Shown here piece by piece: positions 34,944 through 41,835 of a DNA stretch of 64,000 nucleotides. A model generated the notes under the pieces. That model did no database searches and had not been told where the DNA came from. It worked only from the letters and a program-made list of their open reading frames with translations. The translations under genes and the position numbers were made by a program. The DNA is from Guillardia theta CCMP2712 (Eukaryota; Protista; Cryptophyta): the NCBI RefSeq assembly GCF_000315625.1, contig NW_005434502.1, forward strand, positions 1 through 64,000, read 5' to 3'. Positions within the stretch are counted from its first letter, which is position 1; each line of letters starts with the position of its first letter.

Positions 34944-35246
34944 AACTACGAGAGCATGGCCGTTGGCACCTCGTTTTAACCCTCGTCCCCGCGCATATGC
35001 CGAAATGACGGCAGGCGGCACGGGGGTAGAACTACTATGTTCGAATTGACAGGCGGGCCAACCCCTGGTCGGTGAATTAAACAGTACAAATAATTAGTTA
35101 AATACCCCCCCCCCCCCGCTTCGCCTCCATGCGGTCTGTGTGGGGCGCTATGGCAGTTTTTTCAGGGGGTTCTGCATGCCATGGCAGGGTATCACAACAA
35201 AATTCAAATCCGATTTTTGGCGGGCAAACCTGTGACCCCCCTCGCC

Positions 35247-38084
35247 ATGGGCAAGCCGAAGGTGCGGAAGACCGAAACATGCCAATCATGCCAAAAACCA
35301 AGAAAGAAGGCCAGTGTTCGAAGATGGCAAGGTGTGCCTGTTTGCACAACTTGTGTACATTTATTCAAAACCCAAAAGGATGAGTGTGGTTCTAAGCGGA
35401 TTTTGCTCTCGAAGTGGGATGATACCTTGGTTTTCAAGCTGTTGGATTTCTTGCAATGTCAAGATCATGCAACTTTGTCTTTGGAGTGTGAAGACAACAA
35501 TCTTCTCACTTCAGCGACCCAGCATCTGAAGTTAAGTCTTCGTTCTGTATCCTTGTTTGAAGTCCAAAAGAAGCTAAAAGTCCTTGGAGATGTTTACGGA
35601 CATACATCAGAAGGGTTTGCGAAATGCTTTCTCTACTATTACACCAAGGTTTTCGAAAAACAAGCATCTGGAAATCCACATGCAGGAACCACTGCTATTT
35701 ATGAGCATTTAAATCGACTTCGTACACAGCTTGGTAATATGCACAGAAAGCATCGAACTCTTTTTTCCCGAATCGAAAAGTGGTCTACCTCACATTTCGA
35801 AGATTTGAATTCATTACAATCCACGATTCACGATTACTTTTTGCGGTAAGTCTGTGATGTTGCTTTCTTCCCCTCTCTGTAGTGTGATCATTCTGCAGAT
35901 ATGCAAAATTGTCGGATGAGCATGTTGATCCATGTCCCCCAAAGAAGCACACCAAGGCAGACTCCGAGCTGTTCATTCAGACAGTTTGTGAAACGTTCAG
36001 AACCCTTGATGGCAACACCCGATGTGAAATCATCCGAAGGATTCTGAGTGAGCACGACTCTCTGTGTCAAGCACAAAAGAAAACATCGGAGCATGAGTTC
36101 TCTGCGATATGCAATGTCGAAAGAGCAGTTTCAAACTTACATGCTTGTGGATTGCCAGATGTAGTTTCTGAATTGGTGATGTTTGCCAGTAATGATATCG
36201 ACGCTTTCAGAACAACACACAAAATCATGCCGTACTTGGTAATGGATTGGTGTCGTCAAAGTTTTAGAGCGAAAGATTCGAGGGGCATGAGATTCTCCCC
36301 GGAGATTATCAGTTTCGCATCAACACTCAAAAACCTTGGCAATGCGACAATGTTGCGGTTCCTGTCAGGGCCAGGGAACAAGTTTACAGACAATTTCCAT
36401 TCTGATCAGGCTTTACATAACTTGCCTCTGCCATGCATCTCTACTCTTTGCAAGCATCAAAGTGCTGACATGAAAACACGAGATGTGAAAAGGTCAAGAA
36501 TATGTAGCGAAATTTTGGACAATTACAGCGAAATGATGAGTACTAACCTTGTAGATGGTATCCACGTGTTGGCGATGGACAAGACGATGATCAATGCTGG
36601 TTTTTGTAAAGAATTCGAAGATTGCGAAGCAGATTTAGGCAACCAGTATGGATGATCGAACTCTATGTTCCTCTATTGCTGCATACATTTCAGGGCTATT
36701 CAAGTTCGAGCCTCCAATTTCAGAGCACGACATTGAGAGTGAGTGCACCTTGAACAATGCCGATGAATACGATGGGGAAGACCTGTCGTCATTGTCAGTC
36801 ACACCTCAGTCGGGAATGGTACACATGGATGTGCCGGAGATGAGAGATATCAAAAATTTTGTTTTGCAATTGCGACGCAACCAGGCCATATGGCAGGTTC
36901 AGAATGAGAAGACGCTAAGATGTAGCACGAGCAAGAGGCCAAGATTGACCTTGAAAGACATGTTCTGTAGGCTGAAAATATTTTGCCGAAGGTATGGATA
37001 CGAAGAAGTTCTGTCATTAGCCAATGACAATCAAGATGAGGAAGAAACATACACTCCATGGGAGATGGAGCGAAGGATAGCAGATGGGCTAAATGAGCTG
37101 GATGAAAACAAGATCCGCTTTAAATTTGACGAATGGCTGTCCAATCCCGTCATCTCTCCTATCACCAAGAAGTTGTTATTCTTCTCACCGTGCATTAACC
37201 ACTTGTTGAAGAATGTCAGGCATTCGATTGGATCAGGGAAGTCACAATCGTCTTCACCGGAAGCCAAGATATGGCATAAAGCTTACAGTGATATCGCCAA
37301 GAAGAATCCATCATGGATGTCTCAGATGGAGGTCGATGGAACCGCCGATCCACAATCTGTGGATATCATGCTGAAGATGTTCAGTGAAAAAGCCATCAGT
37401 CTACTGAAGGCAGAAGGGCATGAAGCGACAGCCAGAATGGCAGAAAGTATGTCTGGCCTTCACAAAGCATTCGATCAAAGAGGTCTGACAGTTTCAGAGA
37501 GGATACGTCTAGTACGCGAAGCTCGGAGTTGGTTGTTGGAAGGGATCGACTGGACCACGGTCAGCCAGAAACACGTGAAAGGATTATCTTCTGTCGCGTT
37601 TGAAGGTTTCATAGTGGCAATTGATACTCATCTGCAAGTACAGCAGTACGTGAAAAATAAGAGACATGTGCTTGGAGACGGAGACTATGACTTCAACTCA
37701 CGAACTCTCTGCACCGATAGTGTGGAGAATCTGTGGTCATTGATTGGCCATCTGAACAAGAAGGATTTCTTGAGAAAATTCAATCAGGCTTGCACAGAGT
37801 TATGTAAAAAGGTGGACCCTGACCTGCCCTTTGTGTACGAGCATTCGAAAAAACGAATTGTCCTCAGCCAACCGCATGAACGGGACACTTTCAACGTACG
37901 GAATGGATCAGATAATGACGGGGAAGCTGAGAACAGCACACATAAGAACAGGCGAAGACGAATTTATGCTAAATCAGCACAATGGGATGGAGGCCTCAAT
38001 GGTAACATGCCCGGGTTTCGGGGATTACGTGACATTGCTGGTTGCAAGTCGAAAAAGAGGTATACGAAAAGTAGAAAACATTAA
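35247..38084 (+). mobile_element. P-element-superfamily-like DDE transposase gene (3 exons, ~909 aa), TIRs not identified
   Basis: N-terminal C4 finger (CQSC..CTTC). RFSPEIISFASTL...LPLPCISTL (P-type HTH region), VLAMDKT (first D), CINHLLKNVR (C/D-x2-H motif), DPQSVDIMLKMFS, TLCTDSVENLWS (catalytic E). Introns 35846-35898 (GT-AG) and 36639-36693 (GC-AG, inferred) join the three ORFs in frame. Confidence 0.75.
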
Positions 38085-38457
38085 AAAGAGCGATAGTGAC
38101 ATCCGAATCATTGGTATCATGAGATAGAACTCACATTTCTCTGATAGACTGTGAGGTTTTGACAATTGTCATCATCGCGCTTTTTGCTTTAATCATCCTT
38201 AAACCTGGTCGCGGCCTGGCTGCCATTGCGATTTCCTGCAAACTTACCCACCCCCTCCCCATCAACATACCCTCTATCATTGAGGGAAAGACACCGGTCC
38301 TAGACCCTTTTATCGCGAGTTCCACCCCCGTGGGCAGGCGGCTGGGCAGGCGGCTGGGCAGGCCCCCCTGGGCAGGCCCAGTGCAGGCCGGTGCTGCAGG
38401 CACACCAGGGGCACACACTGAGGCACACCAAAGTCCGACGGGGCTGCCGCTGCTGTT

Positions 38458-38688: not shown

Positions 38689-38892
38689 GTTGGCAGGCAG
38701 AAGTTGCACGTTTGTTGCATCAGAGAGTATAGCAGGCCGCTGAGATTTCCAAGTCGAATTGTACAGACAAGTAAACCTCACAAACATATGAGTCTTTTGT
38801 TAAGAAAGATCTCGCGAGCTATCGCAATGCTATCTCGCTCTGAGGGGTGTTAGATGCGCGTCTCTTTCCTTCCTATATACCTCAAATCTTCC

Positions 38893-41835
38893 TGTACCTG
38901 CAGCTTTCCCTGCTGGCTCACCTGCTGCTGCCTCACCTGCTGCTGCCTCACCTGCTGCTGCACCTGCTGCTGCTTCACCTACTGATGTTTGACCTGCTGC
39001 CTCACCTGCTGCTTGACCTGCTGCTGCCTCACCTGCTGCTGCCTCACCTGCTGCTGCTTCACCTGCTGCTTCTTTACCAAGTTGTTCCTTCTCCTGCTGC
39101 TTGACCTGCTGCTTCATCTGCCGATGCTTGATATACTGCTGGCTCACCTGCTGCTGCTTCACCTGCCGATGCTTGACCTGCTGCTGCTTCACCTGCTGCT
39201 GCTTCACCTGCTGCTGCTTCACCTGCTGCTGCATCTGCCGATGCTTGACCTGCTGCTGCTTGACCTGCTGCTGCTTGACCTGCTGCTGCCTCACCTGCTG
39301 CTGCCTCACCTGCTGCCGCTTGACCTGCTGCTGCCTCACCTGCTGCTGCCTCACCTGCTGCCTCACCTGCTGCCTCACCTGCTGCTGCTTTACCAAGTTG
39401 TTGCTTCTCCTGCTGCTTCATGTACTGATGCTTGACCTGCTGCTGCCTCACCTGCTGCTGCCTCACCTGCCGCTTCACCTGCTGCTGCTTCACCTGCTGC
39501 TGCTTGACCTGCTGCTGCCTCACCTGCTGCTGCTGCTGCCTCACCTGCTGCTGCCTCACCTGCTGCTGCTTGACCTGCTGCTGCTTCACTTGCTGCTGCT
39601 TGACCTGCTGCTGCCTCACCTGCTGCTGCCTCACCTGCTGCTGCCTCACCTGCTGCTGCCTCACCCGCTGCTGCTTCACCTGCTGCTGCTTGACCTGCTG
39701 CTGCTTTACCAAGTTGTTGCTTCTCCTGCTGCATCACCTGCTGCTTGACCTGCTGCTGCTTGACCTGCTGCTGCTTTACCAAGTTGTTGCTTCTCCTGCT
39801 GCCTCACCTGCTGCTGCTTGACCTGCTGCTCACCTGCTGCTGCCTCACTGTTGTGCTTTACCTGCTGCTGCCTCACCTGCTGCTGCTTCACCTGCTGCTG
39901 CTTCACCTGCTGCTGCCTCACCTGCTGCTGCTTGACCTGCTGCTGCTTCACCTGCTGCTGCTTCACCTGCTGCTGCTTCACCTGCTGCTGCTTCACCTGC
40001 TGCTGCCTCACCTGCTGCTGCATCTGCCGATGCTTGACCTGCTGCTGCTTCACCTGCTGCTGCTTCACCTGCTGCTGCCTCACCTGCTGCTGCCTCACCT
40101 GCTGCCTCACCTGCTGCTGCCTCACCTGCTGCTGCTTCACCTGCTGCTGCCTCACCTGCTGCTGCTTCACCTGCTGCTGCCTCACCTGCTGCTGCCTCAC
40201 CTGCTGCTGCCTCACCTGCTGCTGCTGCTGCCTCACTTGCTGCTGCCTCACCTGCTGCTGCTTGATCTGCTGCTGCTTCACTTGCTGCTGCTTCACCTGC
40301 TGCTGCCTCACCAGCTGCATCCTCACTTGCTGCTGCCTCACCTGCTGCTGCCTCACCTGCTGCTGCTTGACCTGCTGCTGCTTGATCTGCAGCTGCTTCA
40401 CCTGCTGCTGCTTTGTGTGCGTCACCTGCTGCTTGACCTGCCAATGCTTGACCTGCAGTTGTTTTTGTTGCTACTTTACCTGCTGATACTTTTAACTGTT
40501 GATGTTTTGCTTGCTGCTTTGCCTGCTGATACTTCACCTGCTGCTTCACAGGCCTCAAGTAATTATACCTCGCTGCTCGCTGGGTCTCGGACAGATTCTT
40601 CAGGACAGATTCTTAAGAAAAGATTTTTTAGGCCTCATCGCTTAGCCTGTCTCCCTCCTGTATCATTTTATCAGTGAACCTGCCGCTGCTAGGCACTGCC
40701 TTCATCGATGCCATCGCAAGTAGATAAGTAGATGCCCATAGAGCCCAACCTTGCTTCCTGCCTCTCCTCTTGTCCCCTGCTCCTACGCTGTGCTTGGGAC
40801 TCGTTGTGTTGAACTGCCAGCAAGCTCAATGGCGGGCAAAACTATGTTTGATATTAAGGATGTGTGACGTGTGAAGAGTGTCAACTTTGCTGCTGCTGCT
40901 TCACCTGCTGCTGCCTCACCTGCTGCTGCTTCACCTGCTGCTGCTGCTGCCTCACCTGCTGCTGCCTCACCTGCTGCTGATCGACCTGCTGCTGCTTCAC
41001 TTGCTGCTGCCTCACCTGCTGCTGCCTCACTTGCTGCTGCTTCACCTGCTGCTGCCTCACCTGCTGCTGCCTCACCTGCTGCTGCTTTACCTGCTGCTGC
41101 TTTACCAAGTTGTTGCTTCTCCTGCTGCCTCACCTGCTGCTTGACCTGCTGCTGCTTGACCTGCTGCTGCTTTACCAAGTTGTTGCTTCTCCTGCTGCTT
41201 GACCTGCTGCTGCTTGACCTGCTGCTTGACCTGCTGCTGCCTCACCTGCTGCTGCTTCACCTGCTGCTGCATCTGCCGATGCTTGACCTGCTGCTGCCTC
41301 ACCTGCTGCTGCTTCACTTGCTGCTGCTTCACCTGCTGCTGCCTCACCTGCTGCTGCATCTGCTGATACTTCACCTGCTCCTGCCTCACCTGCTGCCTCA
41401 CCTGCTGCTGCTTGACCTGCTGCTGCCTCACCTGCTGCTGCTTCACCTGCTGCTTGACCTGCTGCTGCCTCACCTGCTCCTGCCTCACCTGCTCCTGCCT
41501 CACCTGCTGCTGCTTCACCTGCTGCTGCTTGACCTGCTGCTGCCTCACCTGCTGCTGCCTCACCTGCAGCTGCTTCACCTGCTGCTGCTTTGTGTGCGTC
41601 ACCTGCTGCTTGACCTGCCGATGCTTGATCTGCTGCTGCTTGATCTGCTGCCGATGCTTGACCTGCTGCTGCTTCACCTGCCGATGCTTGACCAGCTGCA
41701 TCCTCACTTGCTGCTGCCTCACCTGCTGCTGCCTCACCTGCTGCTGCTTGACCTGCTGCTGCTTGATCTGCAGCTGCTTCACCTGCTGCTGCTTTGTGTG
41801 CGTCACCTGCTGCTTGACCTGCCAATGCTTGACCT
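38893..41835. repeat. Complex 15-bp CTG-rich satellite (CCTGCTGCTGC[C/T]T[C/G]A), two blocks
   Basis: Blocks ~38893-40455 and ~40887-41835, with recurring higher-order spacers (ctttaccaagttgttgcttctc; catctgccgatgcttga). Confidence 0.95.

Follow-up and report, generated by a model that had tools for sequence, protein, structure and literature searches.

We analysed a window of 64,000 nucleotides from the cryptophyte Guillardia theta CCMP2712 (RefSeq assembly GCF_000315625.1, contig NW_005434502.1, positions 1 to 64,000), which corresponds to contig C172 in the searched assembly (87.1 Mb, 669 contigs). Three open reading frames (ORFs) were confirmed at 35181-35849 (222 aa), 35909-36655 (248 aa) and 36648-38084 (478 aa), designated ORF1 to ORF3, with ORF2 and ORF3 overlapping in different frames. 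A first-pass annotation, made from the sequence alone, had joined these ORFs by a 53-nt GT-AG intron and a 55-nt GC-AG intron into an apparently intact gene for a P-element-like transposase of about 909 aa, either a divergent transposon or a domesticated host gene. The ORFs lie within an element of 3314 bp (35019-38332), which is most probably an internally deleted, frameshifted, non-autonomous transposon copy; the enzyme of its full-length relatives most probably has a P-transposase fold and represents a distant branch of the P-element/THAP9 (TNP-like) superfamily. We estimate the probability of this reading as a whole at about 0.9.

The element is bounded by 15-nt terminal inverted repeats (TIRs) with one mismatch, which had not been visible in the first-pass annotation. 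The TIR sequence is given by CACGGGGGTRGAACT, and the element starts with CACGGGGGTAGAACT and ends with AGTTCCACCCCCGTG. The TIR pattern had 33 exact matches in the genome, compared with 0 for a reversed control. When the window was compared by blastn with the fetched copies, homology among copies began at 35019 and stopped at 38332-38333. A clear 9-bp target-site duplication (TSD) was found in seven of the eight copies examined (six of the seven other than the window copy): GGCAGGCGG in the window copy, GCACTGGCC in copy C20, CCGACCCCC in C3, GAGCTGGGC in C24, GGGGTCCTG in C36, ATCGTGCTG in C42 and GGTCTGCTG in C80. All seven clear TSDs were rich in G+C (6-8 of 9 bases), the genome region having about 50% G+C. 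This composition may reflect a target preference, such as is known for P elements. A TSD of 9 bp is compatible with the P superfamily, since the P element of Drosophila buzzatii and its miniature inverted-repeat transposable element (MITE) BuT5 make TSDs of this length (PMC3698922).

In the assembly, we detected at least 66 matches to the ORF3 protein and at least 73 matches at the DNA level, representing dozens of copies as well as fragments. Of the matches to ORF3, three had 100% identity, one set was about 83% identical, and in another set, at about 61%, open frames of 972 codons ran without interruption. Full-length forms measured 4036 bp (C86) and, in a sister subfamily at 61% identity termed C, 3972 bp (C24, C36, C42 and C80). 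The four subfamily-C copies were intact and near-identical (99.8-100%), each with its own TSD. From these full-length forms, copy length decreased to 424 bp, with many distinct internal deletions. The 424-bp copy (G000:C11:1091652-1092075) is a TIR-to-TIR remnant of subfamily A in which the left TIR almost directly joins the last ~390 bp, and it is the most reduced, MITE-like member of this deletion series. Another Guillardia family, considerably more divergent, was also observed (P0133, GUITHDRAFT_113240, on a contig of 476957 bp), which is about 29% identical in its N-terminal part and shares the N-terminal CxxC-x19-CxxC finger and the motifs LPDIVS, RNMRYS and NLPLPSxST. The sequence of P0133 suggests that several lineages of the P-like clade are present in the Guillardia genome.

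Copy C86 was 99.9% identical to the window copy, with four single-nucleotide polymorphisms and an additional 722 bp at window position 36638-36640. Its gene consists of a 222-aa ORF, an identical 53-nt interval and then a single uninterrupted ORF of 965 aa, the long exon. In the window, ORF1 ends in CG directly before GTAAGT, and a CAG acceptor 53 nt further on sets ORF2 in phase. The intron site is common to subfamilies A, B and C, falling between ...IHDY-x-x and Y-A/V-K/R, and its phase is 2 in each of them. The intron ends are also kept (GTAAGT or GTAACC, and CAG), and the interior of A could not be aligned with that of C. These shared features make it very probable that the 53-nt interval is a genuine intron. 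The family is transcribed, as seen from the transcript-derived MMETSP proteins P0002 and P0134. The first of these (635 aa) tracks subfamily B to about residue 620 and then continues in a short unrelated tail (columns 634-701 of alignment A1), as if derived from another internally deleted copy or from alternative splicing. Between subfamilies A and B, Ka/Ks over the long exon was 0.16, and the ORF has therefore been under purifying selection.

For all searches and for folding, the ORFs of exon 1 and exon 2 were taken separately; residues are numbered here on the C86 long exon, and the finger cysteines on exon 1. From the N-terminus, the protein comprises a C4 zinc finger, a helical region, an RNase H-like core, a C(2)H motif after β5, a helical insertion domain and the catalytic Glu (E). 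The finger is of the form CxxC-x19-21-CxxC (CxxC-x19-CxxC in the window), with C34, C37, C55 and C58 invariant in subfamilies A, B and C, and no Pfam match to THAP was found at E ≤ 1 in exon 1 of these three subfamilies. The first catalytic Asp (D1) is putatively D224 in VLAMDKTMI, as the Asp of this A.DK motif is conserved in distant relatives. Between β1 and β2, the protein is predicted to contain a first extra insertion, a coiled coil of about 170 aa (model helices 175-295), followed in the model by two strands, a helix and the strand VWSF. The second Asp (D2), D456 in SFDGE, comes directly after VWSF and aligns with the FDGQ of 48 relatives.

A second extra insertion of about 175 aa, predicted to be helical, separates D2 from the C(2)H motif. 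YDGE and MDVP, previously considered as the second Asp, both lie within this insert, and it is SFDGE instead that aligns with the relatives. The motif itself, C669-I-N-H672, immediately follows the strand KLLFFS (model strand 564-569). The helical insertion domain, also of about 175 aa, occupies the position of the GTP-binding domain of the Drosophila P transposase (DmTNP) and aligns with the DmTNP structure 6p5a both by structure and by profile; a nearly invariant Asp (AFDQRG) stands two residues off the column aligned to D444 of DmTNP. The catalytic Glu, E847 in VENLW, aligns with E531 of 6p5a. Full-length members of the family have a D-D-E triad, with D1 as a putative assignment, and a C(2)H motif after β5. 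The spacing from D1 to D2 is 232 aa in this family and 73 aa in DmTNP, that from D2 to the [C/D](2)H motif 213 and 36 aa, and that from the motif to E 178 and 192 aa, respectively; the two longer spacings correspond to the two extra insertions of the Guillardia family.

The superfamily of the enzyme was addressed by sequence and profile searches. With single proteins (the window ORFs and full-length C86), phmmer gave no match in the PDB, nor did a profile made from Guillardia sequences only (A1), and a word-indexed homologue search returned Guillardia proteins only. A hidden Markov model (HMM) built from the three subfamilies and searched against 1.84 billion representative proteins gave 129 matches at E ≤ 1e-3. 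Those beyond Guillardia were metagenomic and animal proteins, for example Batillaria KAK7507914.1, and the long matches were collinear at profile blocks 410-497 and 645-890 and, weakly, at the N-terminal region. In the resulting 67-sequence alignment (A2), the motifs P.PV.YG...S, FDG(Q/E), [C/D]xxH..(K/T)N.R, D.QS..A..FS and RS...D..E(N/T)FFS were observed across 40-65 sequences, and in this wider clade the [C/D] position was mostly occupied by Asp.

Pfam identified YqaJ in 8 of the A2 relatives, a helix-hairpin-helix (HhH) motif in 7, and TNP-like_RNaseH_N (PF21787) in 3 of the 67 sequences, one of these three being above the curated cut-off (P0019, 25.8 bits versus 24.6). Searched against the PDB, the A2 profile had the Drosophila P transposase 6p5a as its sole significant match (E 1e-7). 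In this alignment, the [C/D](2)H motif fell on D339 and the E motif on E531, which are residues of the P signature string of Yuan and Wessler in the form in which PMC8230255 cites it. Among language-model neighbours, all ten of the ten best named Atlas clusters were TNP-like.

The part of the C86 long exon from residue 100 to residue 905 was modelled by AlphaFold on the basis of A2, with a predicted local distance difference test (pLDDT) score of 73.8 and a predicted template modelling (pTM) score of 0.70, residues 150-780 being confident; with a shallow alignment of six sequences, pLDDT was 42 and the model unusable. Foldseek placed 6pe2 and 6p5a as the top two structures (probability 1.00, E 0.03). 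With VIA-align, 6p5a_A gave a Z score of 22.1 (root-mean-square deviation 3.4 Å, 280 residues), compared with 9.9 for RAG1, 8.5 for Hermes and 7.5 for Transib. The C86 model thus predicts a P-type RNase H-like core, including the helical insertion domain between β5 and the E-carrying helix. The first-pass annotation had described a P-superfamily-like transposase with a C4 finger in place of THAP and a Cys in the D(2)H position, and these points were all confirmed. A fold comparison, which it had proposed as the way to locate the D-D-E triad, gave the P-like fold; D2 and E were placed by alignment of their motifs, and D1 is a putative assignment.

It is unlikely that the enzyme belongs instead to another [C/D](2)H superfamily, such as Mutator/Mutator-like elements (MULEs), hAT, Transib/RAG-like elements or Kolobok. 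TSDs of 9 bp are typical of MULEs; they are, however, also made by the bona fide P element of D. buzzatii cited above (PMC3698922). The Cys in place of Asp in the motif could likewise point away from P elements, but Asp is the majority residue in the wider clade, and the THAP domain, which is missing here, is typical of the P superfamily but is not its defining catalytic criterion. RAG1, Hermes and Transib did appear in the fold list, with Z scores of 7.5-9.9, yet the score of 6p5a was over twice that of any other transposase. Finally, a direct Pfam match to TNP-like domains was lacking, whereas the relatives carry PF21787 and the P transposase was the only significant profile match in the PDB. 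There were no Pfam matches to MULE or hAT either, the exclusion of MULE being only indirect, as the PDB may hold no MULE structure.

The deletion in the window copy was delimited by direct comparison with C86, in which the missing 722 bp are flanked by two GGC triplets. By blastn, the 83% copies likewise carry additional DNA exactly at window position 36638-36640. The loss shifts the reading frame, because 722 = 3 × 240 + 2, and it takes out roughly residues 246-486, comprising the coiled coil and D2. The D-D-E triad is therefore not encoded by the window copy, and since D2 lies within the lost segment, the second Asp could not be placed in the first-pass annotation. The coding capacity of the window copy is at most 473 codons (exon 1 and the surviving part of exon 2), ending at an out-of-frame TGA. 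The deletion is unlikely to be an assembly artefact, as it is common to two independent loci.

An intact gene with GT-AG and GC-AG introns, encoding a protein of about 909 aa that is either domesticated or a divergent P-like transposase still active, is very improbable at this locus. The three ORFs are indeed free of internal stops, and a 55-nt GC..AG interval (36639-36693) would bring ORF2 and ORF3 back in frame; however, this stretch is coding in the 99.9%-identical C86 parent (...ATSMDDRTLCSSIAAYIS...) and is conserved at the protein level in subfamilies A, B and C. Moreover, the frame break coincides exactly with the 722-bp deletion, and the joined product would be without D2. The "55-nt GC-AG intron" is the deletion junction and not an intron. 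What stands of the earlier gene model is thus the three ORFs and the 53-nt GT-AG intron; the second intron, the frame of about 909 aa and the description as apparently intact do not. Nor is the window locus a domesticated gene, because the genome search revealed dozens of paralogous copies with TIRs and TSDs.

A twin of the window copy was found at C20:640212-643525, with 100% identity over 3314 bp and the same deletion. Its flanks are unrelated to those of the window copy and its TSD is different, and we therefore infer recent mobilisation of the deleted copy. That the identity of the twins arose by segmental duplication or assembly redundancy in an old, immobile family, as 100% identity over the whole element might suggest, can practically be dismissed, since identity ends exactly at the TIR ends, each twin has its own TSD (GGCAGGCGG versus GCACTGGCC), and the four subfamily-C copies behave likewise, each with a different TSD. 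Both autonomous and non-autonomous copies thus belong to this young family of cut-and-paste transposons.

Several observations weigh against the reading of the window copy as a deletion derivative of a mobile P-like element. The TSD of C86 is ambiguous (7/9), in a repetitive target. Mobility was deduced from comparison of the copies, from which the family appears to be still mobile, and was not directly observed; no transcript spanning the junction of exon 1 and exon 2 was found. Pfam gave no domain at E ≤ 1, including TNP-like (PF21787, PF21788, PF21789), MULE and hAT, in the three window ORFs or the full-length C86 ORFs, on which the only matches were at chance level (K-box, Flg_hook and R2K_3). 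D1 could alternatively be D408 (VVAQDG). The putative D1 falls within the first 150 residues of the model, for which pLDDT was below 50, and an N-terminal profile (A4) gave only chance matches to EndoS in the PDB, so that the helix-turn-helix region and D1 are not linked to P by sequence. The Foldseek E-value is weak, and the link to P runs via intermediates and via a predicted structure whose alignment included those same intermediates.

In the mechanism that we propose, C86 and the four full-length copies of subfamily C would be the source of the transposase, which would bind the element ends through its N-terminus of C4 finger and helical region, excise the element and integrate it with a 9-bp stagger. 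When gap repair that follows excision is interrupted, it typically leaves an internal loss between short repeats as its footprint. The 722-bp deletion may have originated in this way, through an interrupted repair of the excision gap rejoined at the 3-bp GGC microhomology. A copy of the window type would then have been mobilised in trans by a full-length copy at least once, giving rise to the C20 and C172 twins. In these respects, the window copy resembles KP-type deleted P elements and Ac/Ds pairs: it retains its two ends together with the 5' portion of the gene, has lost an internal segment between short microhomologies, and appears to have been re-inserted elsewhere. As in KP-type elements, it could encode an N-terminal DNA-binding fragment, here of 473 aa; by analogy with KP, one may speculate that this product acts as a repressor of the family.

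The Guillardia family and DmTNP (6p5a/6pe2) share the order D2, β5, [C/D](2)H motif, helical insertion domain and E in ENxF/W. The helical domain takes the place of the GTP-binding domain of DmTNP (residues 339-528), and the QS..A..FS motif of the insertion domain is found in both. Short TIRs and a TSD in the range of 7-9 bp are features of the P superfamily (P, 1360, Galileo, THAP9) that the family also exhibits, and, as in natural P elements, internally deleted non-autonomous copies are abundant. The family differs from Drosophila P in its C4 finger in place of THAP, the Cys instead of Asp in the (2)H motif, TIRs of 15 rather than 31 bp, a consistent TSD of 9 rather than 8 bp, and a gene with two exons. 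In our literature search, no description of a P-like element from Guillardia or any cryptophyte was found.

The nearest relatives outside Guillardia were animal fusions of YqaJ with a TNP-like core and HhH-containing metagenomic proteins (HMM E-values of 1e-17 to 1e-29). These share with the Guillardia family the D2 block, the long spacing from D2 to the motif, and the [C/D](2)H and E motifs, but the identity is just 17-25%, and their Pfam matches to YqaJ and HhH have no counterpart in the Guillardia proteins. The fused proteins, in which a YqaJ-like recombinase/exonuclease domain is joined to a TNP-like core, include P0019, P0032, P0042 and others; P0019 is the 1583-aa protein KAK7507914.1 of the snail Batillaria attramentaria. 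No paper on a YqaJ-P (TNP-like) fusion was found in the literature search. The closest of the non-Guillardia relatives (P0011, P0016, P0017 and P0036) are metagenomic and carry the helix-hairpin-helix motif PF12836, which in P0016 is located between D2 and C(2)H, within the extra insert that DmTNP is without. One source labels these metagenomic relatives 'ComE-like DNA-binding protein'. Tentatively, the Guillardia elements, the HhH metagenomic proteins and the YqaJ-fused animal proteins might together form a deep and so far undescribed P-superfamily branch, with two extra modules in the RNase H core and a non-THAP end-binding domain, in which the 473-aa fragment of deleted copies could further serve as a KP-like repressor.

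The features of the window copy are listed in Table 1. The insertion target of the element lies in a GGCAGGCGGCTGGGCAGG repeat, and the flank at its left TSD is of low complexity. A long low-complexity tract (38830-39820, both strands) was observed just downstream of the element; one of its strands translates as (QQVK/QQVR)n, and other frames give repeats rich in Ala/Gly/Glu or in Cys/Leu.

Table 1. Position of the element and its parts in the window.
Feature	Position	Strand	Evidence
Left 9-bp TSD, GGCAGGCGG	35010..35018	.	Matches 38333-38341 exactly
Left TIR, CACGGGGGTAGAACT	35019..35033	+	Repeat pair 93% complementary; homology to C20, C86 and C3 copies starts here
Exon 1, N-terminal 222 aa including C4 finger (Cys codons between 35280 and 35354)	35181..35845	+	ORF and Cys conservation
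53-nt phase-2 intron, GTAAGT...CAG (very probable)	35846..35898	+	Sequence; position and phase kept in subfamilies B and C
Surviving exon 2, RFS..FA..LPxxxTL region and putative first catalytic Asp	35899..36655	+	ORFs
Putative D1, AMDKT (codon)	36578-36580	+	Asp conserved in distant relatives (A.DK motif); putative assignment
Deletion junction, GGC microhomology, 722 bp of C86 copy absent	36638..36640	+	blastn against C86; lengths 4036 versus 3314 bp
C-terminal two fifths of transposase ORF, out of frame with exon 2	36641..38084	+	ORF3; 100% identical to C86 and C20
Extra insertion and GTP-binding-domain-like insertion domain	inside 36641..38084	+	Alignment with relatives
Out-of-frame TGA closing surviving exon 2	36653-36655	+	
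C(2)H motif, CINH	37191-37202	+	Aligned with 40-65 relatives; D339 of 6p5a
Catalytic Glu codon in DSVENLWS	37725-37727	+	Aligned with relatives; E531 of 6p5a
Transposase stop	38082-38084	+	
Right TIR, reads CACGGGGGTGGAACT on the - strand	38318..38332	-	Repeat pair; genome pattern matches
Right 9-bp TSD, GGCAGGCGG	38333..38341	.	Matches left TSD

Short introns inferred across frame breaks are a common trap, and in this case the gene model had been that of a deletion derivative. The element is a divergent variant within the known P superfamily and not a new kind of element; it widens the known architecture of this superfamily, in that the finger is of the C4 type and not THAP, the motif is C(2)H, the catalytic core has two additional insertions and the TSD measures 9 bp. 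In Guillardia, it provides a case of autonomous and non-autonomous partners at near-zero divergence in a cryptophyte, in a family undetected by Pfam, which might be exploited in this organism as a transposon tool of native origin or to mark recent dynamics of the genome.

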